Positions 3,001-51,100 of a stretch of 64,000 nt of DNA are shown in pieces. The stretch lies in IMG/VR virus record IMGVR_UViG_3300047510_001118, positions 186,001-250,000 of that record; one strand, written 5' to 3'. The position numbers and the translations under genes are program-made. Under the pieces are notes generated by a model. The model worked only from the letters and a program-made list of their open reading frames with translations. It had not been told where the DNA came from and did not search any database. Positions within the stretch are counted from its first letter, which is position 1; every line of letters begins with the position of its first letter.

Positions 3001-6000
3001 TCTGTACTGATTGTGAATCGTGTTCCGTCTAAGATTTCCCTTATATAATAGGTAAAACCTGTAGTAACACCGCCGTAAGGTGTGCCGATAAATCTTATTG
3101 GCATATTAACAGTTAGCAATGCTGTACTAGAAACTACAATCCAGTTATCCTGCCCGCCAAATGTTTCAATAATCTGTAGTTGATTATTAGATGTATCTGT
3201 AATATTAGTTGAATAATATGTAGGTATAAATCTTATCTGTTGGTCGACGTATAGCGTACTAGTATTTCCGCTAGATAATGTAAACAATCCGCTAGAATTT
3301 TCTGTAGTACCAACATTTAACAAATCAAACGAATCTTTTACTACTGCGGCTGTTTTATTAAATGCGTTAAAATCAGCAATATATCCGTACTGTCCGGCAC
3401 CTGTGCCGCTTTGTATAAACAATCTCATACCAACGTAATTATTTGCTTCTCCTATGTCGGACTGAGCAATAGTAAAGGTTACTTCGTCTCCTGTTTGTCC
3501 GTTATTTGAGCTAACTAGATATCCTCTACCGCCCGTGCCCGTTCCGGTATCTACAATTCGTCCTTCAAATACTGCGCCGCCACGTAGTTCGTCACCGATA
3601 GCCACAGCATCTATGCCTGCTCCTGTGATTACATAGTCAGCATTAGTAGTGATATTGTTTGTTGTTGTATTAGCATAGAATGTTAACCCTGTACCAATTT
3701 GTATTTGAGCGCCATAGATTCTTGTAGTACCTGAGAATCCTAACTTTCCTCTTGGATAAATTCTAAATTGTAGATTATTATTAAAGGCATTAGTATCGTA
3801 GATTCTCATCCACAATCTATACCAGCCGTTAGGCAACTCAACTGCTCCGTATTCAACCGGGGTTAAGCCGCCACCTTCGCTGTAAGTCGTAATTATTTCT
3901 GTTTCAAAATTATAACTTACACCGCTAGATACTGTTGATGTTCCGCTAAAAATACCATATAAATCAATAAGTTGTGCGGTACCCCGTTTTACGTGTAGAC
4001 TTAGAGTATATTTTAAATTGCTGTTTGTTGGTACTGTTCCTGTAGCAGTAACCGTTGCGATAGAACTTCCTGACAGTGTTACAACTGTTATAATACAGTC
4101 GTTATCGCCATCTACACCGCCTAGTTGACTACCTAATATTCTTAATTGATTTCCTACAACATATCCGCCGCCACCAGTGTTGACTGTAACTGTATACTCT
4201 GTGGCTCCTACTACTACATCAAATAAAGAACCAATGCCAGAACCAGTGATGTTAAGAGCGTCAAGGCTAGTATAATTAGCACCTGGAGGCGCTATTGATA
4301 TATTTTGATATAGATATGATGTATCAGTATTAGATGTTAGTCCTGCTACTGTCCAAGCATTAGTTTCACCTGTTGGAGAAACTAGATTTTTTTGTAATGT
4401 AAGATTTCCATCCGAAATCCAAATACCATTTAAAAATTCGTTACTGTATTTTAGTAAATTCGTTGTTTGTTCAAAATAATTAGAACCAGCATTAGCGTAC
4501 TGCATGGACAATATTTCTGCGTTAACACCAAATGCGCTTTGAACTATAGCCTGTACTTGACTAGAACGATTATCTACTAGAGCAGTTACTGGATCTTCTT
4601 CTGGGTCAAAGCCTTCAGCAATAACACCGAAGGTACCATATGAGCTGTTACCATTAGTAGCACGGATACGTCCACCGTCTTCAGCAAAATAGCCAGCATA
4701 AGCATAGTATGAGAATACAGAAACTGCCTCAGTTAAAGAGCCTGTGCCAGTACACCAGCAACCGATACCATCGCTGATAACCTGTGTGAAGTCGTTGGTT
4801 GTGATAGATTTATTGCCACCGTTGTGTAAAGTGCCGTCGACTTTATAACCCACACAACCGTTACCAAATGTAGTTACGTTTTGTATGTAAGGGGAACGCT
4901 TCATGATCCATACAGATGTGTCATTAGGACCAGTTCCTGGATCTAAACTTACATAAGCACCGCCAGTTGGTCTGCGTGTACCAAAACTATTTGGTGCTGT
5001 TAGTGTTCCTTCTAAACCTGCTAGAGTCATGTTACGTATGCCTGTGGCATTTCTTACATAGAACATGTCTTTAAGATTATTTCCAGCATAGACTCTCATG
5101 TAACCGGAACCGTTTGGTATTGGCAATATATCCCCGCCAGGTGTAAGAGATATAGAAACATCTTTAGTCAATGTGTTGATACTTTTAACATAATATGTTT
5201 GGCCTGTAGTTATTCCGCCAAAGTCGTCGTTGACGGTGGCTGCTACGAATTGTATCGGATCATTAACTTCTAAATTTTCAACAGATTGTAATTTAAATGC
5301 GCTAACAGATGTTAGGGACAATGTTGTATAACTTATAAAAGAATTTTTAGGACGGACCACTACTCCTCTTAGTTCGTCACCAATTAAGGCAGTGTTGTCT
5401 GGAAGTGAAATAGGCAAGTCTTCAAAATAAGTTCCGGTTTTTACAAAAATAGAAGTGGTAATTCCATAGTTAGGTAAAGGAACGTTCTTAGTATTAGCAT
5501 CTTGGATAGCGGATATTAAGATATCCATTAAACTGGTTATTTCAATATATGCTGATGGTTCTGCTTGATAAGCATTGTTAAAGACCTGTGGGTCTATATA
5601 TGTAGGAGTCGGAATGATGACCCAATCTGATTCCCAGTTTTCTGCTACTCCCGGTTCTCTGCTGATGTTGTCGTTGATTAAACTAGAATACCAAAACCCT
5701 TGATAGTAAATAACATCATCTTCGTTGTAGGTATCAGTACTAATCCAAGTTCTGTTAATCTGTTGATAGTTAGTAAGAACTTCGTCTTGTTCTAACGCAT
5801 ATTGAATAATTGTTTTTAATTGTGTCAGCGCGGCCACAATATATTCTTGTGCGTCATCTGTGGCTTCATTCCTAAATGATGTTGTACTACCTTCCGCAAA
5901 AAATGCTAGAGTTGTGTATACTGTTTTACTATTACTGCCTCTAGTAATATCATATAATAGGGCATCAATTACTAATTTAGCATCTCTTTTTGTAGAAAAT

Positions 6001-24914: not shown

Positions 24915-27275
24915 TTATAACATGTTTCCAACAGAATTCCTAGTGTTTTTGGCTGTTTTACTTAGATAATCCACAGCGTCTGATTGCTGTGAAACCATTC
25001 TGCCCATGTTCATATTTAACTGATTTAATATGTCTAACATCTCTTTATCGGATGGTGCTGACATTGCTGTAGAAGATTGTTCAGCGCCTTTTGGTTTATT
25101 GTCAATAGGATTAGTTCCCTGTTGAGTTAACTTTTCCATATTGGCATTTAATTGAACAAGACTTTGAGTAAGTTTGTCCATGTTAATATTGTTTAATTCA
25201 GAAAATGCTGAAGACGTTGACATAATATTAGTCTTCAATTCTCTAAGTTTGTTATTACCGTTTTCTAAAGATACGCTGACATTTTCAGGCAATACTAGAC
25301 TAGAAAGATCAGATTTTTTAGCCGCTTCGTTTAGAGCTTCAACTTGCTTACGTGTGTCAGCCGTGGCATTAACTGTCGCCTGACGCTGTCTAACTGTTGC
25401 GTCCTCAGATGTAGATGTCGGTGTTCTTTCTGTTGCTGGTCGAGCAGGCACTGCCGGAGCAGGAGGAGGTGTGGCAGGCCTTTCGAGTGGCCTACGTGCA
25501 GCAGTTTCTAATTTAGCGGCATCCATTGCTCGACGTTGCGCAATAGTTGGTCCTCTTTCATCTTCAGGTTTTAACAATGCTTCTTTGCCCTGTTCTACTA
25601 TAACCTCTCTAACTCCAGTAGCATCAGCAATTTCATACAATGCCCAAGTAATCAATCCTATCTTAAATGTTTTCTTTAGCACTGCTTTGCCTGTGGCCAT
25701 GGCTGCTTTTAATGGAGTTTTTCCTGGTCTTGTAGGTCCTTCTGCGCCAGGCGGCAATGTTTCTCCGGCCTTTTCTCGCTGATACTTGTCATATACTTTA
25801 GAAGCGCCATAGGCTGCTAGTCCGCCTCCTGCTGCCAATCCCATCATTTCTCCGGCTATTCCTGTACCGGCTAACGCAGTAACTTTTGCCCAAGTTTTTA
25901 AATTATCAAAAGAATCTGCTAACTCTACAGCCTGGTCGCCAGCATAATTCATACCTATAGCAGTGTTATCTAATATTCCTGAATCAATAAGAGCAGATTT
26001 AAATTTGTTCTGTACTTCAGTCAGCGTTTGATCTAAGTTTGTTACTAGTCTTGTTGGATCTTGACTTTTTAGTTTGTCTTCTTGTTCTGCTTGTGCTTTT
26101 GCTAATGCAGCAGAACCGTCGCCAAGTTGCCCTAATCTAGCAGACGCTGTTATCATATTATCAGTGTTCATTGTTGTATAAACACCAACTAAATTACGAT
26201 CTTGTTTTGATCTTTCTCTCGCCGATGCGGCCGCATCATCATTGGCTTTTACCAGTGCCGCTACTGATCCAGCATTGCCTTCATACACTTCTCTAGTAAC
26301 ACGGGCCGCATCCTGACCGTTGCGTCTCATAGCCAATTGATATTCTCTGGCTTCTTTGGTAATAGCATTACCACCAGCACTGATACTATCAACCATACCA
26401 GCGGCTAATTTACCGCTAGGATCGGCTTGTTTTAATCTAGCAATTTCTGCTTGAACTTGTGCGGCTAGTTTTCCTGTAGGATCTTTTTCCATCAATGCCT
26501 GCATGGCATTTCGCATACGAAGATCTCTGGCTGCGGCTGCGTTTTGTTCATCTAATGCTTTGCGAGATACACCTGTTGCCTTGGCAAGTCTATCTAATTC
26601 TTTGTTATACTCAGCGGCACCAGCAGCCAACTGTGCGTCATCCATTCGTCTAGCCAATCCACTACGCTGCATTGTTTCCATGTAGGTAGCAGTGCCTTCG
26701 GCAATGTCATCCATTGTAAGGCCAAGTCTAGATAATTCCTTTCCTGCTCCAGCCATTACTAATCCGCTGACGCTGGCAAATTTTTGAGCACCTTCAGTGG
26801 CTGAGCCACCCATGACTGCTAAAAATTGTGAATTCTGTTGAACAGTTTTTCCAAAAACATCTAAAGGTAATCTGGCTTTGCCTGCGGCTAACTGCGCAGA
26901 CATTAGCGATTCGCCTAGATCTATACCAGTACCAGATAGTGTTCGGAATACTTGAAGATTACTGTCAAGGGTTGAACCAAAAGATCTAACAGTCTTTCCT
27001 AGACCTTCGGTGCCTATTTTTTCAGTTAAATCTGCTAGTTGTCCGCTGAAACCTGAAAGTGTTGGTGCTGTATTTGAAAATGCTTTTTCAACTAATCCAG
27101 CACTAGTTCCTATTCCTTTGTCAACTGCTCCTGCTACTGCAGGACCAGTGAATTTTCCACCAGGAGTTGGCGTACCACCGCCACTAAATGCTCCGCTACT
27201 GGAATTCTCTCTAAGACCATCACGCATTCCTTGGGCAACTGCTTGTCGTATCTGTTCAGGGGTTAAATCTGGCAT
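24915..27275 (-). CDS. Tape-measure-like protein, 786 aa
   Basis: Long Ala/Leu/Gln-rich helical protein with a central Gly/Ala hydrophobic segment (ALAGTGIAGEMMGLAAGGGLAAYG); adjacent to gp26-like and head genes. Confidence 0.7.
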   Translation of the reverse strand: MPDLTPEQIRQAVAQGMRDGLRENSSSGAFSGGGTPTPGGKFTGPAVAGAVDKGIGTSAGLVEKAFSNTAPTLSGFSGQLADLTEKIGTEGLGKTVRSFGSTLDSNLQVFRTLSGTGIDLGESLMSAQLAAGKARLPLDVFGKTVQQNSQFLAVMGGSATEGAQKFASVSGLVMAGAGKELSRLGLTMDDIAEGTATYMETMQRSGLARRMDDAQLAAGAAEYNKELDRLAKATGVSRKALDEQNAAAARDLRMRNAMQALMEKDPTGKLAAQVQAEIARLKQADPSGKLAAGMVDSISAGGNAITKEAREYQLAMRRNGQDAARVTREVYEGNAGSVAALVKANDDAAASARERSKQDRNLVGVYTTMNTDNMITASARLGQLGDGSAALAKAQAEQEDKLKSQDPTRLVTNLDQTLTEVQNKFKSALIDSGILDNTAIGMNYAGDQAVELADSFDNLKTWAKVTALAGTGIAGEMMGLAAGGGLAAYGASKVYDKYQREKAGETLPPGAEGPTRPGKTPLKAAMATGKAVLKKTFKIGLITWALYEIADATGVREVIVEQGKEALLKPEDERGPTIAQRRAMDAAKLETAARRPLERPATPPPAPAVPARPATERTPTSTSEDATVRQRQATVNATADTRKQVEALNEAAKKSDLSSLVLPENVSVSLENGNNKLRELKTNIMSTSSAFSELNNINMDKLTQSLVQLNANMEKLTQQGTNPIDNKPKGAEQSSTAMSAPSDKEMLDILNQLNMNMGRMVSQQSDAVDYLSKTAKNTRNSVGNML

Positions 27276-27291
27276 TTATTTTTCCACAAAA

Positions 27292-27334
27292 AACTGCGCA
27301 TATAAATAATTTGAGCAGTGTATCATTATATTTA
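27292..27334. promoter_or_regulatory. Divergent late promoter pair
   Basis: Perfect TATAAATA on the plus strand at 27301-27308 and TAAATA on the minus strand at 27334-27329; flanked by AACTGCGCA (27292-27300) and its near-inverse (27312-27320). Confidence 0.75.
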
Positions 27335-27349
27335 GTTGGAGTCTAAACC

Positions 27350-28207
27350 ATGGAAAATCAAGCAGTAAACCCGTTGAAAAAATATTTTCGACAACCAAAA
27401 TTATATTTAAAATTACCTAGTTCTGGATCGTTTTATCCAGAGGGAACCTTAGAAAAAACAGACAATGGAGAATATCCAGTATTTCCAATGACTGCCAAAG
27501 ATGAAATTACTATCAAGACTCCTGATGCGTTAATGAATGGACAGGCCACTGTTGATGTTATAGAAAGTTGTATTCCCAATATTAAAAATGCTTGGGCAGT
27601 TCCATCTATTGACATTGATGCTATACTGATAGCAATTCGTATTGCCACCTATGGCGAAACTATTGAATTAGACGTAACACTGCCAAACACTACTATTATT
27701 AAAACATTTACAGCAGATTTAAGATTAGTTGTAGACAAACTAATGAACGCAGTTTTTGATACTGAAATAAAAATTAGTGACGATTTAACTGCGTTTATAC
27801 GTCCTTTAACTTATAAAGAATACACTCAGAATTCAATTAAAACTTTAGAAGAACAGAGATTATTTTCAATAGTTAATAATGATCAACTTTCAGAAGAAGA
27901 AAAACAAAAGAATTTTTCAGTAAGTTTTAAAAAAATTACAGATATCACAGTGAACACAGTTGCTCAGAGTATCACTAAAATAGTTACACCTGACGGTGTA
28001 GTAACTGATCCACAGTTTATCAAAGAATTTTTAGAAAATTCAGACAAAGATTTTTTTAATAAGTTTATTGTAGCACTAGCAGATCAAAAAGAAAAATTTA
28101 TTATGCCGCCTTTTAAAGTTCAAACCTCTGAGGAAGAACAAAAAGAAGGAGCACCAGCAGAGTTTGAAGCACCTGTAGTCCTGGACGCATCAAATTTTTT
28201 CGGGTAA
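27350..28207 (+). CDS. gp26: Baseplate hub/tail assembly chaperone (T4 gp26-like)
   Basis: NPL..YFRQP..Y..LPS.G, PMTAKDE..K.PDAL.NG, ID.DAILIAIR.A.YG motifs; ends NFFG. Confidence 0.8.
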   Translation: MENQAVNPLKKYFRQPKLYLKLPSSGSFYPEGTLEKTDNGEYPVFPMTAKDEITIKTPDALMNGQATVDVIESCIPNIKNAWAVPSIDIDAILIAIRIATYGETIELDVTLPNTTIIKTFTADLRLVVDKLMNAVFDTEIKISDDLTAFIRPLTYKEYTQNSIKTLEEQRLFSIVNNDQLSEEEKQKNFSVSFKKITDITVNTVAQSITKIVTPDGVVTDPQFIKEFLENSDKDFFNKFIVALADQKEKFIMPPFKVQTSEEEQKEGAPAEFEAPVVLDASNFFG

Positions 28208-28257
28208 AGCTCTTTAATCTGCCGCTCGATGAAGCCATGCGGGTGATTAAGGGGCTT
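28195..28257 (+). promoter_or_regulatory. Predicted -1 programmed ribosomal frameshift signal
   Basis: T_TTT_TTC heptamer (28195-28201), 5 nt spacer, 13 bp stem 28207-28219/28245-28257 with an inner hairpin; the -1 frame is open into the 28237-28431 ORF. Confidence 0.75.
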
Positions 28258-28431
28258 GAAAGTGAAATCAAGTCGTTGAAGTTAGAATTATTAAAACTCT
28301 GTTGGTATATGAGAGGTGGTATTTCATTAGAAGAATGTTACAATCTATCATATGATGATCGAGCATTAATTGTAGACATTGTTAAAGAGAACATGGAAAC
28401 TACTAAGAAATCAGGATTACCTTTCTTCTAA
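28237..28431 (+). CDS. gp51-like assembly protein, probably expressed as a -1 frameshift extension of the gp26-like ORF (about 360 aa fusion)
   Basis: WYMRGGIS.EE.YNLS..DR..I motif; no recognisable RBS before ATG 28237; frame is open back to the slippery site. Confidence 0.7.
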   Translation: MRVIKGLESEIKSLKLELLKLCWYMRGGISLEECYNLSYDDRALIVDIVKENMETTKKSGLPFF

Positions 28432-28891
28432 CCTATATAGATGAACTACGTTCATCTGTTCTTCGCTTTCGCTCGAACTATTTCTTCTTTTCTTAACTAT
28501 TGAACTATTATTAAGTGCGAAGCACTTTAGTATTATCCAGATTGTTCAGGTCACACTTAGCCCTAGCGGGCTAAGAAAATGAACATTATCCGAGTTGCAC
28601 AATGTCACACAGCGTTATGGCATTACAGAGGCGGTCGTCCGGTACCTCGAGCCACGTCTTATCACGACGGCAGGCATATAAATGTACGCTATCACACTTA
28701 TATCCGTTAGGGAATTACCCTTCATTTAGCCTTTTTAAATTCTTTTCAAACAGCAAAACCAGTTGTATATAGGCATATCTGATCTTCGTCCTGTCAAGGA
28801 TAGTTGCTGAGTACTCTTAACGGCAAGAGAGTTTCCGTCCCTGCGACTCGTAGTCCAGGTATTAGGGCGCACGACATTGGCCTGCGCGAGC
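28432..28891 (-). ncRNA. Candidate large structured ncRNA (about 400-460 nt)
   Basis: Longest non-coding gap in the window, more GC-rich than its flanks, with at least 12 helices readable by eye including nested multibranch domains; starts right after the GIY-YIG stop codon. Confidence 0.7.
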
Positions 28892-29338
28892 TTATTGACC
28901 GTTTAATTTTGCCTGAGCTTGTTCTTGTAGGCGTTGTCGAAGTATGTTTGAACCACCCACTCTAACGTTGATAATGCCGTTATAGTATTCGTCAGATTCT
29001 AAAACTCTGCGTTCAAACTGTTCTCTTGCCTCTAAATATGACAGTTCTGCCTTGCTTTTACAGTAGTAAAGTATTTCTCTTGTGAAGTTTTCTGGACCTA
29101 ATGATTGAACATCTGCGTTTAACCTATCAGATGAGCCCCAGTATTCGCGCCAATCGCTTTCTACTGTGCTACGTCTTTTAAGTTTTTTGCCTTTGAGTGG
29201 TGGTTTAGTACGTTTGAATTGAGCTAATTTCTTGCCTATGTACTTTTGTCCAGTTTTGAGGTTAGTAATGAGATACACAAAGCCAATATGACCTTCTGGT
29301 ATTTCTTCAACTAAAGCATTTTGATAGTGCCATGACAT
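28892..29338 (-). CDS. Stand-alone GIY-YIG family endonuclease, 148 aa (catalytic domain only)
   Basis: GFVYLITNLKTGQKYIGKK motif plus downstream conserved E (YLEAREQ) and N (YYNGII); no C-terminal DNA-binding repeats. Confidence 0.8.
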   Translation of the reverse strand: MSWHYQNALVEEIPEGHIGFVYLITNLKTGQKYIGKKLAQFKRTKPPLKGKKLKRRSTVESDWREYWGSSDRLNADVQSLGPENFTREILYYCKSKAELSYLEAREQFERRVLESDEYYNGIINVRVGGSNILRQRLQEQAQAKLNGQ

Positions 29339-29353
29339 GCTCGTATATACCGA

Positions 29354-29584
29354 TCAGTCACTGTCCTCATCCTTGGTTTTGGTTTTGCCTATAAGTTCTT
29401 TACGTTTTGACAGTATTTCTATGCGCCTTTTAGTAGCCATCTCTCGCACTGTTCTCAGTGCTTCTCTGGCTTCTACACTTGATCCAATGTAACCATATCG
29501 TTCAAAGCGATCATTCCATCTACAGTAGGCAATAATCGCTTTGATCAACTCTTCATGTGTGTCGTTATCGAACTCTTCACTCAT
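29354..29584 (-). CDS. Small helical protein, 76 aa, basic C-terminus (weak Hc1 histone-like pattern)
   Basis: ORF track; start overlaps the gp46 stop; S.EAR.AL..V..MA..RR.EI pattern. Confidence 0.65.
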   Translation of the reverse strand: MSEEFDNDTHEELIKAIIAYCRWNDRFERYGYIGSSVEAREALRTVREMATKRRIEILSKRKELIGKTKTKDEDSD

Positions 29585-31361
29585 AAATTTCTACATCATT
29601 GGCATAACTGGTGAACCCGTTTTCTTTTACTACCTTGAGCACGTTGTTCACGCGACCCACTAATTCATCCCTATGAGAAATTAGATAGATATTCTTATGT
29701 CGTTCACGGCCCATCTTTTTCAAGATACCTAGAGAGTTTTCAACTCCGTTGGCGTCCATGCCCGAATCAATAAGTTCATCTATGAATAAGAGATTGATGT
29801 TCTGGTATAACGACTCCCAAACATCACGGAACGCCCACGACAATCCTAAGATTAAGCGATTCCTTTCTCCTCGACTCAAGTTATCAAAGTCTAAATCTTG
29901 ACCGAGTTGGGTTATTTCTACCGTTAGGTCATTTTGGAATACAACGGTGTGAGGTAGACCCACCTTATCAAGGTAGTAAGTGAGACGATTGTTTAGATAA
30001 GCAAGATTTTGGTCAATGATCTTCTTACGAATAAACGAATCTTTGTTTGTTAAAAGTTTAAGAAGAAACTCTTGATGATCTTTTACAAGAGTTAAACTGT
30101 TTATAGAATCCCACGATACATCCTGTAACGCAGTATTTTCTAACTCTGTGATCTGTTCTTGATACATATCAGTTTCTTCTTGTTTGGATTTTAGTTGGTT
30201 AGCAAGACTTTCCAAATTACTTCTGTGATTGTATGCTTCATTAAGTGTGTCGTAGAACGTCTGTGGCCGACCGTTGATGTCTCCAATCTGTTCTAATTCT
30301 TTAATAATTAAAGTTAAATCGCCTGTGACCTTGGATTTGTATGTATCCGCATCTAGAAGATTTTTTTCTGCCGCTTTAATCATTTCGTCATGTTTGTGAT
30401 CATGTAGTTCTTGTTCACAAGCCGGACATGTTTTCTTGTCTAATTGTGTTATTTCTTTAGAATATTTCTGTACAGACTTATCAGCCTGCATAACTGCTGT
30501 TTCAAGAGTGGCTTTTTCTTTGTTAAGACTCTTAATTAATGCGGCTTGTTCGTTATAGACTTTGAGTTTTTCGTGTTGAGATATCTCGTTTTCAATGTCA
30601 ACTTTTGAAAGTTCATCAATGGCCTTTTCTATTTTTGCTATTTCTGCTTCACGATTCTTTTGCCAAGCACTTTGTTTTAATTTTAAACTGTTAATACTTT
30701 CTTGTATACGTTCATTTGACTTTTTAACCGCATCAATCCGTATAGTCTCTTGCGTAATTTCGTCTTTGGTAATACGTACTTGTTCTTTTAACAGTTCTGC
30801 TTTCTCACTGAGTAGGGTTATTCCTAACAACTGTTCAATAATTACTCGTTGATCACCCGACTTCATAGATAAAAACGGTTCAGTATAGGTGTTAAGAGCA
30901 ATGATATGCTTAAACATATCGTGACTCATACCAATAAGCTCGTCAATATCTTTCTGTGTTTCTCTGCTGTCGCCTTGCCCTTCGTCATCTACGTCAGCAT
31001 TTTCCTGTTCTTGATCATCAACATAGAACTTTAATACGTTAGGCTTACGTCCACGCTCAATTCTATACAATCGTCCATTCTTTTCAAACTCTACACAGAC
31101 TAACATATTTTTACCGTTAATCTTGTTTACAAGATTATCTTTTTTAATGTTAGTTAGAGCCTGTCCAAATAAAGCATAACTTAGTGCGTTTACAATAGTG
31201 GTCTTACCCGTGCCGTTTCGAGAGCCGGAATCGTCACCTCCTTGGTCCAAGTTCTCGCCTAATACGAGGGTAAGTTGTTCTTGATTAAAATTTATAGCCT
31301 GAGTAGCATTACCCACGCTCATAAAATTTTTAACAGTTAAATCTTTTATTTTTATTATCAT
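29577..31361 (-). CDS. gp46: Recombination endonuclease ATPase subunit (T4 gp46/SbcC/Rad50-like)
   Basis: KNFMSVGN start, Walker A GSRNGTGKTT, coiled coil with CPAC zinc hook, signature LSRGE, Walker B LLFIDE. Confidence 0.95.
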   Translation of the reverse strand: MIIKIKDLTVKNFMSVGNATQAINFNQEQLTLVLGENLDQGGDDSGSRNGTGKTTIVNALSYALFGQALTNIKKDNLVNKINGKNMLVCVEFEKNGRLYRIERGRKPNVLKFYVDDQEQENADVDDEGQGDSRETQKDIDELIGMSHDMFKHIIALNTYTEPFLSMKSGDQRVIIEQLLGITLLSEKAELLKEQVRITKDEITQETIRIDAVKKSNERIQESINSLKLKQSAWQKNREAEIAKIEKAIDELSKVDIENEISQHEKLKVYNEQAALIKSLNKEKATLETAVMQADKSVQKYSKEITQLDKKTCPACEQELHDHKHDEMIKAAEKNLLDADTYKSKVTGDLTLIIKELEQIGDINGRPQTFYDTLNEAYNHRSNLESLANQLKSKQEETDMYQEQITELENTALQDVSWDSINSLTLVKDHQEFLLKLLTNKDSFIRKKIIDQNLAYLNNRLTYYLDKVGLPHTVVFQNDLTVEITQLGQDLDFDNLSRGERNRLILGLSWAFRDVWESLYQNINLLFIDELIDSGMDANGVENSLGILKKMGRERHKNIYLISHRDELVGRVNNVLKVVKENGFTSYANDVEIYE

Positions 31362-32362
31362 AGATTATTATAAATTGCCAATAATACTTTGGGATCATAG
31401 TTATCGCTTTGTATACTTGCGATTTGATTGCTGACAATTTGGTCAATACTTTCAAATTGTTCTACATTTAGATCTGTGTTAATCTCTATTTCTTTTTTCT
31501 CTGGAATAAGTGTTAACTCTCTAAGATTATTTTGTTTTACAAATGTTTCTTTGATAAAACTTGCCTCTTCAAAACTAATTGGAAGGTCAATACCTACTCT
31601 AAGATATGTTTTAGGTAGAATAAGTTTTTCACTGTTGTCTAATAATTCACTGAGTTTAAGTGTTTTAAATTTAGGAGCATCGTTCCATATCTTATATACC
31701 GGAGATTTTCCATGCTCTAAGATCATCATACCACGGTCATCGTCCCAGGCATCAGCATAATTGTGCGGAAATGCGTTGCCAATATACACAATATTCTGTT
31801 TAGCCTGACGCTTATGGAAGTGTCCTGAAAACACATATTCGGGATTCTTAAAATGATCTGCCTGTAACTCGCCATGATCTGGCATCTGTACCATAGCATT
31901 CATCATAAACAAGGGAAGTTCAAAGTGACCAAACACATAGCGGCTCTTTAATTTTTCCATTTTACGCCATTCGTCACCAACTAACCACGGGACTAGAGTA
32001 ACGTCGTCGATAGTTAGTATGTCACTGACAATGGTGACTCCGGGAATATGGCGTCCCCAGTCTACAGAGTGTACATCGCGTTTATCTTTGTAATATAAAT
32101 CGTGATTACCGGGAAAGAAAAAGAATTGGTCAAAGGCTTTGCCTAATTTTTCTAGGCTTCGAATGCTACTAACCATAGTTAACATATTAAGGCTGTTGCG
32201 ATTATGATGCCAATCGCCTAGAAAAATTCCAGTATCACAGCCTTCTTTTTTAGCCTCAGCAATAAACCAATCTACGAAATCTTCGCAGTCTTGATTATGT
32301 GCTGCCGAATTTGATTTTAATCCAAAGTGTATGTCTGTAAAACACGCAACCTTTTTAAACAT
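31358..32362 (-). CDS. gp47: Recombination endonuclease nuclease subunit (T4 gp47/SbcD/Mre11-like); start likely ATG 32362
   Basis: Metallophosphoesterase motifs DIHFG, GDWHH, GNHD, GHFE, GHFH; AGGA RBS before the second Met. Confidence 0.95.
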   Translation of the reverse strand: MFKKVACFTDIHFGLKSNSAAHNQDCEDFVDWFIAEAKKEGCDTGIFLGDWHHNRNSLNMLTMVSSIRSLEKLGKAFDQFFFFPGNHDLYYKDKRDVHSVDWGRHIPGVTIVSDILTIDDVTLVPWLVGDEWRKMEKLKSRYVFGHFELPLFMMNAMVQMPDHGELQADHFKNPEYVFSGHFHKRQAKQNIVYIGNAFPHNYADAWDDDRGMMILEHGKSPVYKIWNDAPKFKTLKLSELLDNSEKLILPKTYLRVGIDLPISFEEASFIKETFVKQNNLRELTLIPEKKEIEINTDLNVEQFESIDQIVSNQIASIQSDNYDPKVLLAIYNNL

Positions 32363-32386
32363 TAACAATTCCTATAGTTTTGGTAT

Positions 32387-42176: not shown

Positions 42177-45100
42177 ATGGCATTTACTAAAGATCAAAAA
42201 GAACCAAAACTACCAATAGGTCAAGACAGCACTCGAAGTGCTTCAGATTTTTTACCTAGATATTTTAGAACAAATACTAATCGTAAAATATTAAACGGAA
42301 CACTTGATCAGTTAATATCTGTTGGTAATGTAGATAAAATTAATGCTTACATCGGTAGAAAATCTACCAAGGCGTATACGCCTACTGACAATTACTTAGA
42401 AGAAATATCTTTAGATCGTCAGTCATACCAACTTGAGCCTGCGATCTTAGTCAAAGACAAATTAGATAATGTAACATTTTTTAAAGATTACAACGATTAT
42501 ATTAATCAGTTACTATATTTTAATACTTTTGATATTGACCACGAGCTAACTAATAGCCAAGAATTTTACAGTTGGAATCCGCACATTGATTGGGACAAAT
42601 TTGTAAACTATCGTGAATATTATTGGCTACCAATGGGACCGCAGTCAATCGCAGTTAAAGGTCAGTCTAAAGACATTGTTAGCACATACTCGATTTCTTT
42701 AGTAGAAGATTCTGATAATTTTGCTTATATTTTTACTCCTGACGGACTGACACGTAATCCTACACTAAAACTTTACAGAGGTCAAACATATAATTTTGAC
42801 ATTGACTGTGAAGGACAGCCTTTAACTTTTTCTACTAATCGTTCTCAAGATATTACATTTGTCTATAAGGACGGTGTGACTAAAGATTCTGAATATGTTG
42901 AAAAAGGAACAATTACATTTAAAGTTCCTGACAATGCGCCTGATATTATCTATTATGTTAGTAAAAATAATATCAACACATCAGGATTTTTTAAAATATA
43001 TGACATTGAAGAAAATACAGCCATCGATGTTGAAAAAGAAATATTAGGTAAAAAAACTTACTTAATCGACGGAATAACTCCGCTGTCAAGTGGAATGAAA
43101 ATTAATTTTATTGGTAATGTTACCCCTGAAAAATACAGTACTGGATTTTGGTATGTAGAAGGCGTGGGAAATGCTATTAGATTAGTTGATTCAGTTACTC
43201 TTGAAAATCCTGGAGGATATACATTCAGTGAAGACATTGACTTTGATAGTGAAAAATTTGATACACAAGGATTTGACAGCAACAATAACTATCCTTCTAA
43301 CAAAGATTATATCACTATTAATAGATCAAGCCGAGATAGAAACCCGTGGTCAAGATATAATAGATGGTTCCACAAATCTGTTATCGAAACATCGGCAGCA
43401 TATAATAATCAACCTATAGATCTTGACCAAGAAGCAAGGGCTAAAAGACCTATTGTTGAATTTGATAGAGATATCCAACTTTGGAATTTTGGAGTAGAAG
43501 CAAAAAATTCAATAGACTTAATTGATTTATATACTAAAGATGTTTTTAGCACGGTAGAAGGATCATTTGGATTTAAAGTTGATGGTGTTTCGTTAGTCGA
43601 AGGCATGCGTGTATTGTTTGCCGCAGACACTGATAAAACAGTCAATGGTAGAATTTTTAAAGTAACATTTGTTACGCACCTAGGACAAAAAAGAATTTCT
43701 CTAATTGATGTTGATGATACAAATCCTATCGAAGGAGAAAGTGTATTAGTACTACAGGGAGATTTTTTAAAAGGAAAAACATTCCATTATTCGTCTGGTG
43801 TATGGAATTTAAGTCAAGAAAAGACTGGTCTTAATCAGCCACCGTTATTTGATACTGTTGATGTATCTGGAAATAGTTTTGGAGATCGATCTGTTTATAT
43901 CGGTTCTACTTTCCAAGGAACTAAAATTTTTAGTTATGCTGTAGGAGACGTACTAGATCCAGTGTTAGGCTTTAACATTGATTATCGCAATATTGGCAAC
44001 ATCGGAGATATTGTTTTTGATTTTAATTTACAAAAAGATCAGTTTACCTATCAAGGTGAAGTTGAATTAATTACAAAAAAATTAGATAGAGGTTATCTAA
44101 AGAAAAATATTTCTATTTCAACTTTTAATTTAATAAACGGTTGGGTTAAGGCAGAATTTAATTCTAAGCAACCAGTTATTCGTCAATACGACACAACAAC
44201 TCAAAACAATTTATTTGAAATTGATGTTTATAAAAATAGTGCCACACTAGACGATCTTGAAGTGTCAGTGTTTGTTGATGATATCAAACAGCCTTCTACT
44301 TCCTATGAAGTATATAGACAAAATAGCATAGCCTACATTCAATTTAACAGCGACTTAGACACGAACAGATCTGTAGTATTAGAAACACGGTCAGCGGCAA
44401 AGAAATTAAAAGATGTTGGTTATTATAAGTTTCCAAGCAATCTTGAAAGTAATCCTCAAAATTTAAGTCTTGACGATTTAACACTGGGAGAAATCACAAA
44501 TCATTTAAAAACTATTGTTGATAATTCTCCAAGTTTTTCAGGACAAATGCCAGGAATTAGTAATCTACGAGATATCGGAGATCAAACTGGATACGGTAGT
44601 CAAATAATTCAACACTCTGCTCCGTTGGCACCAATTATCTATTCTTTTACTAACAAAAATGTTAATATAATTAAGTCTCTAAGATATGCCAATGATGAAT
44701 ACTCAAAGTTTAAAAGAAACTTTATTAGAACTGCTACAACATTAGGATATGATGGGGAAACTCGAGATCATGTTGATTTAATTTTTAAAGAATTAAGAAA
44801 AAATTCTACTACATCATCACCATTCTATCTCAGCGACATGGTACCGTTTGGTGTAAACTTTATCTACGAACAAGAAATCATCGACGATAGTTTTACTGAT
44901 TATCCGTTGACATTTGATTTTAATTTAGAAACATTAAGTCGTAAATCAGTTTTAGTTTACTTAAACGACACATTATTATTATATGGTAGAGATTACATCT
45001 TTACAAATGACAGTTTTGTTAGATTGTTAGCCCCAATCACTACAGGTGACAATTTAAAGGTAGCACAATATGAAAACAGCCTTGGCTGCTGTGTTCCACC

Positions 45101-48100
45101 GACGCCTACTAAGTTAGGATTATATCCAAAATTTGAACCTAAAATTTTTATTGATAACACATATCAAACACCAACGTTGGTAATTCAAGGGCACGATGGC
45201 AGTATCACAGTAGCCTTTAATGATTATAGAGATAATCTAATATTAGAATTAGAATATAGAATTTATAATAATATTAAGAAAGAATATGATCCTTCATTGT
45301 TTGACATTAATAATTTCATTGAAGGCCACCATAGAAAAACTAACCTTTCAACTAATGAATTAAATCTTGCTTTAAGACAAGAATTTTTAACTTGGTTAGG
45401 TTTAACTAATAAAGATTATACAAAGCACGATTTCTTTGATAGAAATAATCCTTATACATTTAATTACAAGTCTTATTCAAGCTCTGACGGAACGCCATTA
45501 ATTGGATTCTGGAGAGGAATATACAAATATTTCTATGACACTGACAGACCGCACACACACCCATGGGAGATGTTAGGTTTTTCAAATAAGCCAACTTGGT
45601 GGGACAGTGTATATGGAATTGCGCCTTATACTAAAGATAATTTAATTTTATGGAATGATCTAAGAGATGGAATAATTAGAGAGCCTGGCATACTACCAAA
45701 ACAAAATAAAAAATACGTTAGGGAAGATTTATTAACTTATATTCCTGTTGATGCTGAAGGCAATCTTTTAAATCCTTTAGAAATTGGATTAGTAAGAAAT
45801 TATGTAGCAACGTCTGCTGAAAAAGAATTTACGTTCGGCGACTGGGCGCCTGTTGAAACTGCTTGGAGACGCGGCAGTCAATATCCGTTTGCTTTAATTA
45901 CAGCCTTAACACTGTTAAGACCTGCTCAAATGTTTGCTGTTTGCTTTGATAGAGAGCGTCAATATAGAGACGGAACAGGGCAAATTGTATATAAAATGCC
46001 AGCAGGAAATCTAAGATTTAATACAACTAATTTAGTCTTTCCTAATACAGTAAAAGAATCTGAAAATAGATTTACCAGTGGACTAATCAACTATATGTGC
46101 GATTATGCTATAAGTAAATCTTTTGGATTTTTAGAAGAGTTTAAAACTGAGTTATCAAGTTTACAAATAAAAATTTCTAGCAAGTTGGCAGGATTTACTA
46201 GCAAAGAAAAATTTAAACTTATTCTCGACAGCCGTAGTCCTTTAAATCAAGGAAATGTTTTTATACCGCAAGAGAATTATAATATAATTCTTAATACTAG
46301 CAGTCCTATTTTATCAATATCTTATAGTGGTGTAATTATTGAAAAAACATCTAGCGGTTTTGTAATCAATGGATATAATAAATCAAATCCTGACTTTAGA
46401 TATTTTAAACCATTAGATACAGTTTCAGACCCAACAGTTAATGTGGGCGGTATTTCAGAAACATATCTCGAGTGGACTTCGGGTAAAACATACACTAAAG
46501 GCCAAGTTGTAAGAGTTGATCAAAACTTTTATAGAGTAACGGCTTCTCATGATGGCGGCCCTTCTTTTGAATTAAAATATTTTGCTAAACTACCAGCACT
46601 ACCAATCGTGGGCGGCAGAGAAGTTATTATTAGAAGAAACTTTACCACAGAAGTTTCAACAATACACTACGGGGCCGAATTAAAAACAACACAAGAAGTG
46701 GTTGATTTTGTATTAGGTTACGGTAAATGGTTAGAAAGCCAAGGATTTATTTTTGACAGTTTTAATCCTGTAATTAAAACAGTTACAGACTGGCAAACTA
46801 GTGCCAAAGAGTTTGCCTTCTGGACAACTCAAAATTGGAGTACTGGATCTGTAATTACCCTAAGCCCAGCAGCCGAAGAAGTAACATTTGGAAAATTATA
46901 TGCGGTTGCTGACAGCATCTACGATCCGTTCTATGAATATACAGTGTTCAAACAAGACGGTCAAACATTAGATCCAAATTTTACAAATACTGTAAGAGAG
47001 AATAATTCTTTTAGTATCCGTCCTAAAGATACTGGAGATGGTGTTTATCACATTACATTAAATTTAATTCAAAAAGAACATGTGCTAATATTAGATGATG
47101 TTACGGTGTTTAATGATGTAATATACGATCAAACACAGGGATATAGACAGGATAGGATTAAAGTTGTAGGCTATAAAATATCAGACTGGAACGGCGATTT
47201 TGTTATTCCTGGATTTGTGTATGACAGAGCAGTATTAACTGAATGGAAACCTTGGAGAGATTATGCTCTAGGAGAAACTGTAAAATACAAAGAATTTTAT
47301 TACAGTGCTAGAAAAAATATTCCAGGAACTGAGCTATTCAACGACGACGAGTGGTACAGATTAAACGGTAAACCAGAAAGTAAATTAATTCCTAACTGGG
47401 ACTATCGTGCTACACAGTTTGAAGATTTTTATGATCTAGATACAGATAGTTTCGATGTTGATCAACAAAAGTTTGCTCAACATTTAATTGGTTATCAAAA
47501 GAGACAATATCTTGAAAACATTATCAATGATGATGTAAGCCAGTATAAGTTTTATCAGGGCATGATTCAAGAAAAAGGAACAAAGAATAGCCTTTCAAAA
47601 TTATTTGACGTATTAAGTTCTACAGATGCCGACAGCCTTGAATTTTATGAAGAGTGGGCAATTAGATTAGGTCAGTACGGAGCCAGCGAAGGATTTGAAG
47701 AAGTTGAGTATCTATTAGACGAGTCTCAATTTTTAATAAATCCACAGCCTATTGAATTAGTTGATTCAGTACCTCCGGGCGTGAATGATTTTGTCTACAG
47801 AATTACTAGAGATAAAGTTTATCTAAAACCAGACACATACGATCACAAACCTATTCCTACAGTTAGGTCTAAGAAAGAATATATTCCTACTGCTGGCTAT
47901 GTACATTTAGAAGATATAAAATATATTATAACTTCTAAAGATCAAATTGGTGACTATAATATCAATGATCTAAAAGAGGGCGATTATTTTTGGTTAGGAT
48001 TTGATAAAACATCTTGGAATGTTTACAGATTTACTCTAGTTGTTTCTTCAGTAAGATCCTTCCAAGAATTATCTAATCTAAGAATTAATTTTAATTCAGC

Positions 48101-51100
48101 AAGTAGTTTATTTTCTGTAAATGATTTTATCGGAATTAACAATACAAATTCATCTGTTGAAGGAATAAAACAAGTTTTAGCAGTCGGCCCAGGATATATT
48201 GAAATTGAACTTCCTCAAGATCTTGATACTGAAGCCATTGCGGCACTTAATAACAATCTACAAGTAAACTTATTTGCTTTTACGTCGCAGAGATTAGCAA
48301 CTACAAGTTCTAAAATTTCAACAATAGACGACTTAAATGATTTACCTGTTCCTAGAAAAAAGAACGGAGAACTTGTTTGGATTGACGGTGCTAATAATGA
48401 CTGGAGTGTGTGGAAGTTTGACAAGTCATATTCTCGATCAGTGATATCTAACACTGCTGATTATTTTGGTAGAACATTAGCAGTAAGCGAAGACGATTCT
48501 ATTTTTGCTGTTAGCAGTCTAACAACTCTAGTTGATAGCAATGGGGATCCTAGAGTAGACGATAACGGAGATATATTAAAGTCTGATGTCTTATCTTTTT
48601 ATACAAGATCTACTGAAAAGTTTTCATGGCTCCTAAAGGGAGAAATATCAAAATTAACAACAATTATTCAGAACGAAAGTTTTCAAAATACAAACTATAG
48701 TTTTGGAGAATCGTTAGCCCTTAGCGCCGCCGGCGACTATCTATTAGTTGGAGCACCAGCATACGGAATAGTTGAGATTCCTCAACCACCGTTGCCACCG
48801 ATTGAAATAGTTAAAAATTGGGGTTATGTTGCCAAGTATAATAAAAACAGATTTAATAATTTTGAATTTGACAGAGTTATTTTAAGTCCAGTACAAACAG
48901 ATAATGAGTTCTTTGGTCATAAGATAGCAATATCTGGTAACGTTGCGTTTATTGCCGGTAAAGGCAGTGACACGGCGCCTGCGTCTTTGACAGCATACAA
49001 TCTAGCATCTAATACAACGACCGTAAGAATTACTTTCTCTAATGTAGAAATTATTGATTTAACAACAGGTTCTGATAATACTGTGGTAATTTCTAAATCA
49101 GACTCAACTGTAGCAGTATACAAACTAGTAGGAAATTCTTTAACATTAATACAAAATATATCATCAAGTGTTGTTCCAGGTACGCTAATTGACGACAAGT
49201 TTGGCCAATCTGTATCAATTTCTAAAGATAATTCTATGATTGCTGTGGGAATTCCATACTACAGTGAAGTGAATTCTAATCAGGGCACAGTGGCAATTTT
49301 AATTAAATCTGGTTCAACTTATCAGTACAGTTATCGTGTCAACAGCCCATTAAAACAAGAATCGGAAAGATTTGGTTACAGAGTTAGATTTAATCCTACT
49401 GGAAATAGATTGGTAGTTTACAGTTACGGTGGCGACCAAACCATTGACACAACGATTGATCAAGGTACAACTACGTTTGACCTAGACGCAATGAAATTTG
49501 TAGAGCGCAGTGAAAATGTTGGAAGTGTGCGTGTCTATGAAAAATACGGAAACAAGTTTATATTCGATGACGAACTTGAGCCTCAAGAAGTCATAGGAAT
49601 TAATTACGGCGACAATTTAGTAGTGGGTAGAAACAACATATATGTCAATGACTACACAGCCGTAGAAGGACGTTTCTATGAATTTGTAGGACGATCAACT
49701 TCGTGGACAAAATATAGAAGTCCAGATCCTATTGTTGACCTAACAAAGATAAAATCTATCTTCTTATACGATACTGTTAAAAATAATATTATTCAAAATT
49801 TAGATTTCATCGATCCAATCAACGGAAAAGTTTTAGGTGTTGCTGAACAAGAACTAAGTTTTAAAACTTATTACGATCCGGCTGTATATTCAACAGGTAC
49901 TGATGCTGTAGTTGTCGATAGTTTAATGCCATGGAAACAACAGCAAGTTGGAAAGTTATGGTGGGATTTAAGTACAATTAAATTTGTTAATCCTAATCAA
50001 GGTAGTGTTGTCTATAAAGCAAATACATGGAATAATGTATTTGCTGAAGCAGAGGTTGATATCTACGAATGGGTTGAGTCAGAATATTCACCAGAAGAGT
50101 GGGATAGTCTAGCAGACACTGAAGCCGGCCTTACACTAGGAATCAGCGGAGTATCAAAATATGGTGCTCAGGTATACAGCGTTAGTCAAACTTATGACAA
50201 CGTAAGCAAAACATTTAAAAACATTTATTATTTCTGGGTTAAAAATAAATCAATAGTTCCTGATGTAACCTTCCGTAAAGTTTCAGCCAGAGAAGTCTCA
50301 GAATTAATTTCTAATCCTAAATCTAAAGGCATTAGATATGTTACTTTATTAGGAAATAATCAATTAGCGTTAGTTAACTGTAAAGAATTAATCACTGACA
50401 AAGATGTTGCTTTAAATATTCGCTATTGGATTATTGACAAAACAGATCAAAATATACACAGTCATTATCAATTATTAGCCGAAGGCAACGTTGACAAAAA
50501 ACTTAACAAGTATGTTGAACAAAAATGGTTTGATAGTTTAATTGGATATGATAACCAGGGTAGAGAAATTCCTGATCCAAGTTTGCCACCGAAGTTAAAA
50601 TATGGTATTTTAAGCAAACCTAGACAGTCAATGTTTGTTAATAGATTAGAGGCATTAAAACAGGTTATCGAAAGAGTTAATTCTGTATTAGTAAACAATT
50701 TATTAATTGATGATTTTGATTTTGATATTTTAAATTCTAAAGAAGAACCTCCGTCAGAATTTTCAAGAGAATATGACATAGCAATTGACACTCAAAGTCA
50801 AATTAGATTTGTTGGATCTACCGGCTTTGACCAAGCCACTGCTAGTTTAGTAATCAAAGAAGGCAAAATTGAACGAGTAATAGTAACTAGTGCGGGTAGA
50901 GGATACAAGATTCCTCCTTCTGTAAAAGTTATTTCTAATACCGGCTCAGGAGCAAGATTATCAACAGTTATCAACTCTTCAGGAGAGGTTACTGCTATTA
51001 ATATTGACAATGCTGGTAGAAATTATCAAACATCGACCTTTGTAGAAATTAGACCGTTTACTGTATTAGTTACTACTGACGAAACTGCGGCTAGTAAGTG

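Follow-up and report, generated by a model that had tools for sequence, protein, structure and literature searches.

A predicted programmed -1 frameshift very likely yields two forms of a T4-type baseplate-hub assembly protein in a giant freshwater phage

Results

A -1 slip site joins a gp26/gp51-family gene to a downstream reading frame

We found that a giant freshwater phage very likely makes a short and a long version of its T4-type baseplate-hub assembly protein from one gene by a programmed -1 ribosomal frameshift, based on comparative evidence rather than on RNA or protein data; phage T4 does this job with two separate paralogous genes (26 and 51). The window analyzed is a 64,000-nt stretch of IMG/VR record IMGVR_UViG_3300047510_001118, and the phage is a RaK2/121Q/PA5oct/Atu_ph07-type jumbo phage with T4-like core genes, not a T4-like phage in the narrow sense.

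To determine whether the frameshift signal is present, we examined the sequence directly and found every feature of the original prediction, which had proposed a -1 frameshift joining a gp26-like ORF to a gp51-like ORF. The upstream ORF (ORF0, 27350-28207, + strand, 285 aa) ends GCA TCA AAT TTT TTC GGG TAA, so that the slippery heptamer T_TTT_TTC lies at 28195-28201 in X_XXY_YYZ phase, with tRNA-Phe in both the P and A sites. A 5-nt spacer (28202-28206) contains the last sense codon GGG and the start of the 0-frame stop TAA (28205-28207), and it is followed by a stem-loop (28207-28257) in which 28207-28219 pairs with 28245-28257 (13 bp with two G-U pairs), CCGC at 28222-28225 pairs with GCGG at 28239-28242, and ATG at 28229-28231 pairs with CAT at 28236-28238. 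The hairpin has an MFE of -23.7 kcal/mol (z = -3.39), 0 of 200 dinucleotide shuffles fold as well, and it is the most stable of 51 windows in the gene. The -1 frame is open from 28168 to the stop at 28429-28431, and the extension (28201-28431, + strand) has 76 codons (RVKLFNLPLDEAMRVIK...SGLPFF) plus stop; the predicted fusion is 284 + 76 = 360 aa. A terminator-like hairpin (28437-28459, + strand) closes the gene.

To determine the family of ORF0, we used profile searches and found matches to Pfam PF12322 T4_baseplate (34 bits against a cut-off of 24.5, E = 3.2e-8), the family that holds both T4 gp26 and T4 gp51, and to phrog_150 'baseplate hub' (1.3e-11). The AF2 model has a pLDDT of 88 and a pTM of 0.82, and the long-form model gave BFVD fold matches to 'baseplate hub assembly protein' at E down to 1.5e-16. 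Family scans of the extension alone gave nothing useful in Pfam or PHROGs, apart from phrog_18291 of 121Q itself.

The slip site is conserved and under nucleotide-level selection

To determine whether the heptamer is conserved, we compared related loci and found T_TTT_TTC in phase 3-18 nt before the stop in 85 of 85, each with a 69-75 codon -1 ORF. With seven further isolates included, all carry a T-run heptamer in the same phase with a 69-90 codon -1 ORF; T_TTT_TTC is present in RaK2, BF, Vibrio 2.275.O, XbC2 and CBB, whereas RsoM2USA and Xoo-sp13 have T_TTT_TTT. The heptamer, its phase and a downstream stem are conserved across 59 distinct metagenomic lineages and 11 cultured jumbo phages, although about a fifth of lineages have only a weak predicted downstream structure. 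The T-run is exactly 6 in all 59 non-redundant loci. Synonymous sites are also fixed: the preceding codon ends in T in 59 of 59 loci, although it encodes N, T, D, H or S and the background T use is 0.43-0.75, and the second Phe codon is TTC in 59 of 59, although TTC is only 14% of Phe codons elsewhere in these genes. That C is the first base of the conserved -1-frame Arg codon. In contrast, a second heptamer, A_AAT_TTT (28192-28198), is present only where the preceding codon ends in A and the pre-slip codon is AAT, and it is not conserved.

To determine whether the downstream structure is general, we first attempted a single consensus RNA fold across clades, which failed because the 3' arm and even the register differ between clades. 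Per-clade folding showed 4 pairs with double changes in the related clade, and compensatory changes relative to two related loci (L039 and L019) were read from the alignment. Using an alignment-free test, we found an uninterrupted helix with score >= 9, starting 3-8 nt (mostly 5) after the heptamer, in 42% of loci against 1.6% of control positions, a 26-fold enrichment (Mann-Whitney p = 5e-18). Mean MFE z is -1.9, and the 3' arm sits at different distances in different clades.

The extension has no conserved start codon and occurs naturally fused to the body

To determine whether the downstream ORF could be initiated independently, we examined its start. The 64-aa ORF that a gene caller would report (28237-28431, + strand) begins at an ATG that lies inside the stem and has no Shine-Dalgarno match, whereas the ATG of ORF0 has GGAG about 10 nt upstream. 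In relatives, the first ATG of the -1 ORF lies anywhere from -1 to +104 nt from the stop or is absent (PA5oct), yet the peptide F-F|R-[ILMV]-[RK]-[IL]-[LIV] is conserved from the first codon after the slip in 59 lineages. PA5oct, like RaK2 and RsoM2USA, also has no annotated downstream CDS. Hence, independent initiation at 28237 is contradicted, and this ATG encodes an internal Met of the extension.

To determine whether body and extension occur as one polypeptide in nature, we searched with an HMM of the extension and found 462 hits, including about 19 natural proteins of 319-351 aa that carry body plus extension in one frame. A profile of these long forms matches window frame 0 at positions 3-261 (2e-52) and the -1 frame at 261-337 (4.8e-30), so the two frames abut at the Phe of the T-run. 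In a natural long form, the extension is predicted to be helical. In 3 of 3 contigs examined with an in-frame long form (L092, L093 and L094, from uncultured relatives), a short PF12322 paralog lies directly upstream, and that paralog aligns end to end with window ORF0 (E = 6e-48). These tandem pairs have the same extension domain as the gene here and the same short-form C-terminus (...SFFND), and their synteny includes a large divergent upstream gene; however, the long form carries four invariant Cys, and the slip site of the short paralog is vestigial or lost, its -1 frame stopping at once.

Relationship to T4 gp26 and gp51

To determine how the two predicted products relate to T4, we compared them with gp26 and gp51. 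Pairwise BLASTP of ORF0 or the extension was uninformative, but gp26 and gp51 both match PF12322 and phrog_150 end to end, and gp51 has about 45 extra C-terminal residues. Hence, ORF0 is equally a gp26 and a gp51 homolog, and the small ORF is not, as originally predicted, gp51 on its own; it would correspond only to the C-terminal tail that distinguishes gp51 from gp26. This tail homology is weak and significant only at the profile level (hhalign P = 2.7e-4 for the tail alone; global E = 3.1e-5 aligned through the tail), and a first, less diverse 45-sequence profile gave P = 0.27. gp26 ends at about the profile position of the slip (...EFFELL against ...NFFG). These results suggest that the unshifted product is the gp26 equivalent and the shifted product the gp51 equivalent. 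In T4, the two are separate, divergently transcribed paralogs with no frameshift, the gp51 tail is about 45 aa against 76 aa here, and gene 26 also makes an internal-start product, 26', which has no counterpart here. The 'gp51' in the Goslar paper is an unrelated protein.

Genomic context and possible chaperone role

The divergent neighbor (24915-27275, - strand) encodes a 786-aa tape-measure-like virion protein, the presumed client. Its identification as a TMP rests on language-model neighbors and annotations, not on a family match (no Pfam match): the nearest named clusters are TMP families PF10145/PF20155, and the RaK2 ortholog is annotated as similar to a tail tape measure. Orthologs were detected in PA5oct and CBB virions by MS, and synteny of portal, TMP-like and gp26-like genes holds in 121Q, PA5oct and Phosso. 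In comparison, the gp26-like protein carries no virion-MS note in the PA5oct record and is absent from the retrieved stretch of the CBB virion-MS table. T4 gp26 and gp51 are listed as hub assembly chaperones, and gp51 is required for assembly but absent from the particle (PMC3004832); in addition, one gp51 homolog is annotated 'tape measure protein assembly chaperone'. Taken alone, the chaperone role is inferred and only somewhat more likely than not.

To determine whether the protein is related to the lambda G/GT tail assembly chaperones, of which the original prediction considered gp26/gp51 the equivalent, we searched for sequence and fold similarity and found no Pfam TAC hit; sequence searches of solved structures found no relative, and Foldseek of the high-confidence AF2 models against the PDB found nothing with E < 0.2 for either model. 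Hence, the similarity is an analogy, and homology is not supported. As appears to be the case for lambda G/GT and P2 E/E+E' (Xu, Hendrix and Duda 2004; Christie et al. 2002), a -1 PRF on a slippery heptamer (probably a run of six T in P2) near the 3' end of the upstream ORF would give an abundant short form and a rare C-terminally extended form with the same N-terminus, the gene sits beside a tape-measure-like gene, and the products are expected to be assembly factors rather than virion parts. However, the PF12322 body is mixed alpha/beta, is about twice the size of G, and often carries a split CxxC...CxxC site, and the stop comes only 1-6 codons after the slip. The gene is also divergent from the TMP-like gene and next to the portal gene, not between the tube and TMP genes (the portal gene is on the other side of the TMP-like gene, and a homing endonuclease and gp46/47-like genes lie downstream).

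Discussion

Our results are best explained by one gene that yields two proteins. In this model, most ribosomes translating ORF0 stop at TAA 28205-28207 and release the 285-aa protein, whereas a minority pause at the hairpin with tRNA-Phe on TTT and TTC, slip back one base, and continue in the -1 frame for 76 codons to produce a 360-aa protein with a helical C-terminal domain. We infer that the two forms act together as non-structural assembly chaperones for the central hub and tape-measure protein, with the body binding the client and the extension of the rare long form docking or nucleating the complex, as in lambda G/GT; the frameshift efficiency would set the short-to-long ratio.

Other explanations were considered. 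Slippage of RNA polymerase on the T-run, adding one U to a fraction of transcripts, is very unlikely but is not excluded without RNA data: the conserved element is a homopolymer, and two distant relatives have longer runs (T9 in RsoM2USA and T7 in Xoo-sp13) where this is more plausible, yet the run of exactly 6 in 59 of 59 non-redundant loci is probably shorter than runs giving efficient transcriptional slippage in bacteria (about 8-9 or more), and the enriched downstream structure is the hallmark of ribosomal -1 PRF and has no role in polymerase slippage. It is even less likely that these are two ordinary genes with no fusion protein. An ATG exists at 28237, database annotators call the small ORF a separate CDS, and 11 of the 59 non-redundant loci (ATGA) plus 121Q (TAATG) have an ATG overlapping the stop, so in those the extension could also be made alone by translational coupling; however, the start is not conserved, the 12 codons upstream of ATG 28237 are conserved as protein, natural in-frame fusions align across the junction, and fixation of the heptamer at synonymous sites would be left unexplained. 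A homopolymer sequencing or assembly error in a single in-frame gene is highly improbable; although such indels are common and in-frame long forms exist in other lineages, the same T6 and frame break are seen in 85 loci from independent samples and in 11 isolates sequenced by different groups, two IMG/VR contigs and DNA assemblies from two samples hold this exact sequence, and natural in-frame forms have a different junction, with one Phe and no T-run.

It is also possible, although unlikely, that the frameshift is real but the products are structural baseplate-hub subunits, which would make the G/GT parallel superficial. Records annotate the gene as 'baseplate hub (subunit)' or 'structural protein', and T4 genetic work cited in PMC3004832 suggested that gp26 may be in the hub. 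Opposing this are the absence of gp51 from the T4 particle, the tabulation of both T4 proteins as chaperones, and the virion MS records of PA5oct and, for the stretch retrieved, CBB, in which the protein is not flagged or listed although its neighbors are detected.

No paper in the literature searched mentions a frameshift in this gene. It is annotated as a 'baseplate hub' gene plus a hypothetical ORF of arbitrary length, or with no second ORF, in all 11 records inspected in detail, and no join was visible in the feature labels of the other listed hits; hundreds of metagenomic proteins are also affected. The gene should carry a ribosomal-slippage join.

To our knowledge, T4-type phages were the conspicuous group without the conserved tail-chaperone frameshift, and our results suggest the same two-form logic there, in a different protein family. 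The function of gp51 is described as unknown (PMC3004832), and we propose a model in which gp26 and gp51 are a short and a long form of one chaperone. More speculatively, and about as likely as not, the requirement for an abundant short form plus a rare extended form of a tail or hub chaperone is universal among long-tailed phages and arose independently in an unrelated fold in the T4 superfamily. T4 genes 26 and 51 would then be the subfunctionalized descendants of a single frameshifted gene, or the reverse, which would explain why gp51 acts 'catalytically' and why its function has resisted definition for 50 years; the frameshift efficiency in jumbo phages would give the stoichiometry that T4 sets by separate expression of the two genes. 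In this model, lineages of this family differ only in how they obtain the two forms: by -1 PRF (this phage and the RaK2, 121Q, PA5oct and Atu_ph07 groups), by tandem paralogs (L092-L094), or by divergent paralogs (T4 genes 26 and 51). These three interchangeable genetic solutions in one family are a clean natural experiment on how recoding signals and gene duplication substitute for each other.

The gp26-like gene ends in a slippery heptamer followed by a hairpin

To determine whether the gp26-like gene carries a -1 frameshift signal, we examined its 3' end and found that the ORF at 27350-28207 (+) encodes 285 aa and ends ...GCA TCA AAT TTT TTC GGG TAA, so that the heptamer T_TTT_TTC occupies 28195-28201 in X_XXY_YYZ phase. 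Five bases later a hairpin begins, whose lower stem pairs 28207-28219 with 28245-28257 (13 bp, two G-U); above that, CCGC at 28222-28225 pairs with GCGG at 28239-28242, and ATG at 28229-28231 pairs with CAT at 28236-28238. The MFE of this hairpin is -23.7 kcal/mol with z = -3.39, and none of 200 dinucleotide shuffles folds as well. The -1 frame is open from 28168 to the stop at 28429-28431. The ATG at 28237, which a gene caller would use, lies inside the stem and has no Shine-Dalgarno match; in contrast, the start of the 285-aa ORF (ORF0) has GGAG upstream. A terminator-like hairpin follows at 28437-28459 (+). Hence, the description in the original prediction of a slippery heptamer, a paired hairpin after a 5-nt spacer, an open -1 frame, and a downstream ATG buried in the hairpin without a clear RBS is accurate throughout.

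Upstream of the gene, TATAAATA, the T4 late-promoter consensus, occurs at 27301-27308 (+), 41 nt before the gp26-like start codon. This is its only occurrence in the 64-kb window, whereas shuffles predict 9.6 ± 2.9 copies; therefore, the motif is strongly avoided except at this promoter-like position. Other late genes in the window lack it.

Gene identity and genomic context

To identify the protein, we searched family profiles and found ORF0 matches Pfam PF12322 (T4_baseplate, E = 3.2e-8, above the gathering score) and phrog_150 'baseplate hub'. The genome is that of a freshwater jumbo phage (IMG/VR contig of 278 kb; freshwater metagenomes) with T4-like core genes, including the portal gp20 (PF07230, 2e-112), the major head protein and protease, and Rad50/Mre11-like gp46/47. 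Its nearest cultured relatives, at 29-36% identity for this protein, are Atu_ph07, Phosso, PA5oct, 121Q/PBECO4, RaK2, CBB/GAP32/BF and Vibrio 2.275.O.

The divergent neighbour (24915-27275 (-), 786 aa) has no Pfam match, but three lines of evidence make it tape-measure-like: its nearest named language-model neighbours are tape-measure families (PF10145 and PF20155 account for 65 of 100 hits), its RaK2 ortholog is annotated as similar to a tail tape measure, and its orthologs are abundant virion proteins in PA5oct and CBB. On the other side, a SegE-type GIY-YIG homing endonuclease (28892-29338 (-); Pfam PF19835, 2e-35) is inserted between the gp26-like module and the gp46/gp47-like recombination nuclease genes (29577-32368), and the content of this interval differs in every relative examined. 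Further along, a 4648-aa ORF (42177-56123 (+)), whose only Pfam hits are a TIG domain and an FG-GAP repeat, sits among large baseplate-wedge or fibre-like genes and is presumably a giant tail or fibre protein.

The frameshift signal is conserved

To determine whether the frameshift signal is conserved, we examined 80 related loci from IMG/VR plus four isolates. All 85 genes, counting the window, carry T_TTT_TTC in phase 3-18 nt before their stop, and a -1 ORF runs 69-75 codons beyond it. Seven more isolates behave the same way, of which two use T_TTT_TTT. Among the 59 non-redundant junctions, the T-run is exactly six in every case. The preceding codon encodes N, T, D, H or S but always ends in T, although background T use for those codons is 0.43-0.75. 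Similarly, the second Phe codon is always TTC, although TTC makes up only 14% of Phe codons elsewhere in these genes; its C is the first base of a conserved -1-frame Arg codon.

To determine whether the downstream ORF could be translated independently, we compared its start codons and found the first ATG of the -1 ORF lies at -1, +2, +14, +32, +50, +71 ... +104 nt from the stop, and PA5oct has no start codon at all. Nevertheless, the -1 peptide is conserved from its very first residue: F-F|R-[ILMV]-[RK]-[IL]-[LIV]...W-Y-M-R-G...E-D-R-E-I-I...K-K-[ST]-G-L-P-F-F. Hence, independent initiation cannot be the conserved way of making this domain. As to whether the ribosome or the RNA polymerase slips on the T-run, we favour ribosomal slippage because of the T6 length and the spaced structure. 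However, the most distant relatives, Ralstonia phage RsoM2USA (locus L090, about 2570-2601) and Xoo-sp13 (locus L091, about 2640-2682), have longer T-runs at the same site (T9 and T7, respectively; heptamer T_TTT_TTT) and longer extensions of about 82-90 aa, and in these phages transcriptional slippage could contribute.

To determine whether RNA structure accompanies the heptamer, we folded the 75 nt that follow it and found this region is on average 1.9 SD more stable than other windows of the same gene; it is the single most stable window in 32% of loci, including this one. An alignment-free test for an uninterrupted helix of score 9 or more starting 3-8 nt after the site found such a helix in 42% of loci against 1.6% of control positions (Mann-Whitney p = 5e-18), although about a fifth of lineages have only weak predicted structure. 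The 5' arm is always at the same place, constrained by the codons for R-[ILM]-[RK]-[IL]-[LF], whereas the 3' arm ends about 44, 62-63 or 81-84 nt from the heptamer in different clades; for that reason, a single consensus fold fails. Within one clade, 4 of 12 pairs show compensatory double changes. In addition, between the window and its relatives L039 and L019, several T-A pairs become C-G or G-C, as read directly from the alignment.

Body and extension occur as one polypeptide in nature

To determine whether the body and the extension belong to one polypeptide, we searched an HMM of the extension against 1.84 billion representative proteins and obtained 462 hits. Most are 40-98 aa ORFs whose called starts fall at many different profile positions. 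However, about 19 of the best 150 are 319-351 aa proteins with the extension at their C-terminus. These are genuine in-frame fusions of a PF12322 body and the extension; their junction reads ...LDxxxxF-R-x-K-[IL]-[IL]..., and they carry four invariant Cys. A profile built from them (337 positions) matches the window in frame 0 over positions 3-261 (E = 2e-52) and in the -1 frame over positions 261-337 (E = 5e-30), so the two frames abut at the Phe encoded by the T-run. This locates the frame change to within one residue.

To explore why two forms would be made, we looked up three contigs that carry an in-frame long form (L092, L093 and L094) and found that, in all three, a second PF12322 paralog of 276-303 aa lies immediately upstream in tandem. 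The one in L092 aligns end to end with window ORF0 (30% identity, E = 6e-48) and ends ...SFFND. The slip sites of these short paralogs are decaying: L092 (1690-1710) keeps TCT TTT TTC, but the -1 frame stops after two codons; L093 (2765-2790) has T_TTT_TTA with a -1 stop two codons later; and L094 has TTC TTT, which is not slippery. Those of L092 and L093 look like relics of a former frameshift site. Hence, these lineages provide a short and a long form from two genes. The window itself holds no second paralog.

Relationship to T4 gp26 and gp51

To determine how the two products relate to the T4 proteins, we compared them with T4 gp26 (208 aa) and gp51 (249 aa), both of which match PF12322 end to end (8.8e-64 and 3.9e-52, respectively) as well as phrog_150. 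gp51 has about 45 additional C-terminal residues, and the two genes are adjacent and divergently transcribed. gp26 ends ...GLKEFFELL, at about the profile position of the slip site, whereas gp51 continues ...VFKLLVNPDEIF..., which resembles the trans-frame junction ...FF-RVMLLQSSPEEI... of 121Q, as read directly from the sequences. A profile of 74 diverse extensions aligns to the gp51 tail with P = 2.7e-4, and the profile of in-frame long forms aligns globally to a T4-like gp51 profile through the tail with E = 3.1e-5. Since a shallower profile had not been significant, we consider this homology probable but not proven. Among T4-like gp51 homologs, the precomputed Pfam annotation lists PF28602 next to PF12322 for gp51-type proteins. 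T4 gene 26 is also annotated with an internal-start product, 26' (positions 3803-4090 (-) of the T4 locus), which is the C-terminal 95 aa; therefore, T4 also makes more than one product from this family, by a different route.

T4 gp26 and gp51 are tabulated as hub assembly chaperones; gp51 is required for assembly but absent from the particle, and its function is described as unknown (PMC3004832). One gp51 homolog is annotated 'tape measure protein assembly chaperone'.

To determine whether the fold resembles known tail chaperones, we predicted structures with AF2 and obtained confident models for ORF0 (pLDDT 88, pTM 0.82) and for a natural long form (pLDDT 91, pTM 0.86), in which the extension is predicted to form helices 266-275, 279-307, 313-317 and 321-341. 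Neither model matches any PDB entry (best E = 0.2-0.7), and no PDB chain is related by sequence to T4 gp26/gp51 or to ORF0. In BFVD, the fold is widespread among myoviruses under 'baseplate hub (assembly) protein' names (59 hits at E < 1e-3). Hence, the similarity to lambda G/GT is one of logic, not of descent.

Two-form logic in the T4 superfamily

In the literature searched, we found no mention of a frameshift in gp26/gp51 or in this gene of RaK2-like, PA5oct or Atu_ph07 phages. Similarly, none of the 11 annotated records we inspected carries a ribosomal-slippage join, and the downstream ORF is annotated with arbitrary starts or not at all.

So far, our computational results show a conserved -1 PRF cassette and a predicted 360-aa trans-frame product that corresponds to natural single-ORF proteins. 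From the T4 literature and from synteny, we infer that the short and long forms are non-structural chaperones of the hub and tape-measure complex, that the long form is the minor species, and that the frameshift efficiency fixes their ratio. The recoding logic is of the known G/GT type; what appears to be new, from the literature searched, is its presence in an unrelated family, in the T4 superfamily.
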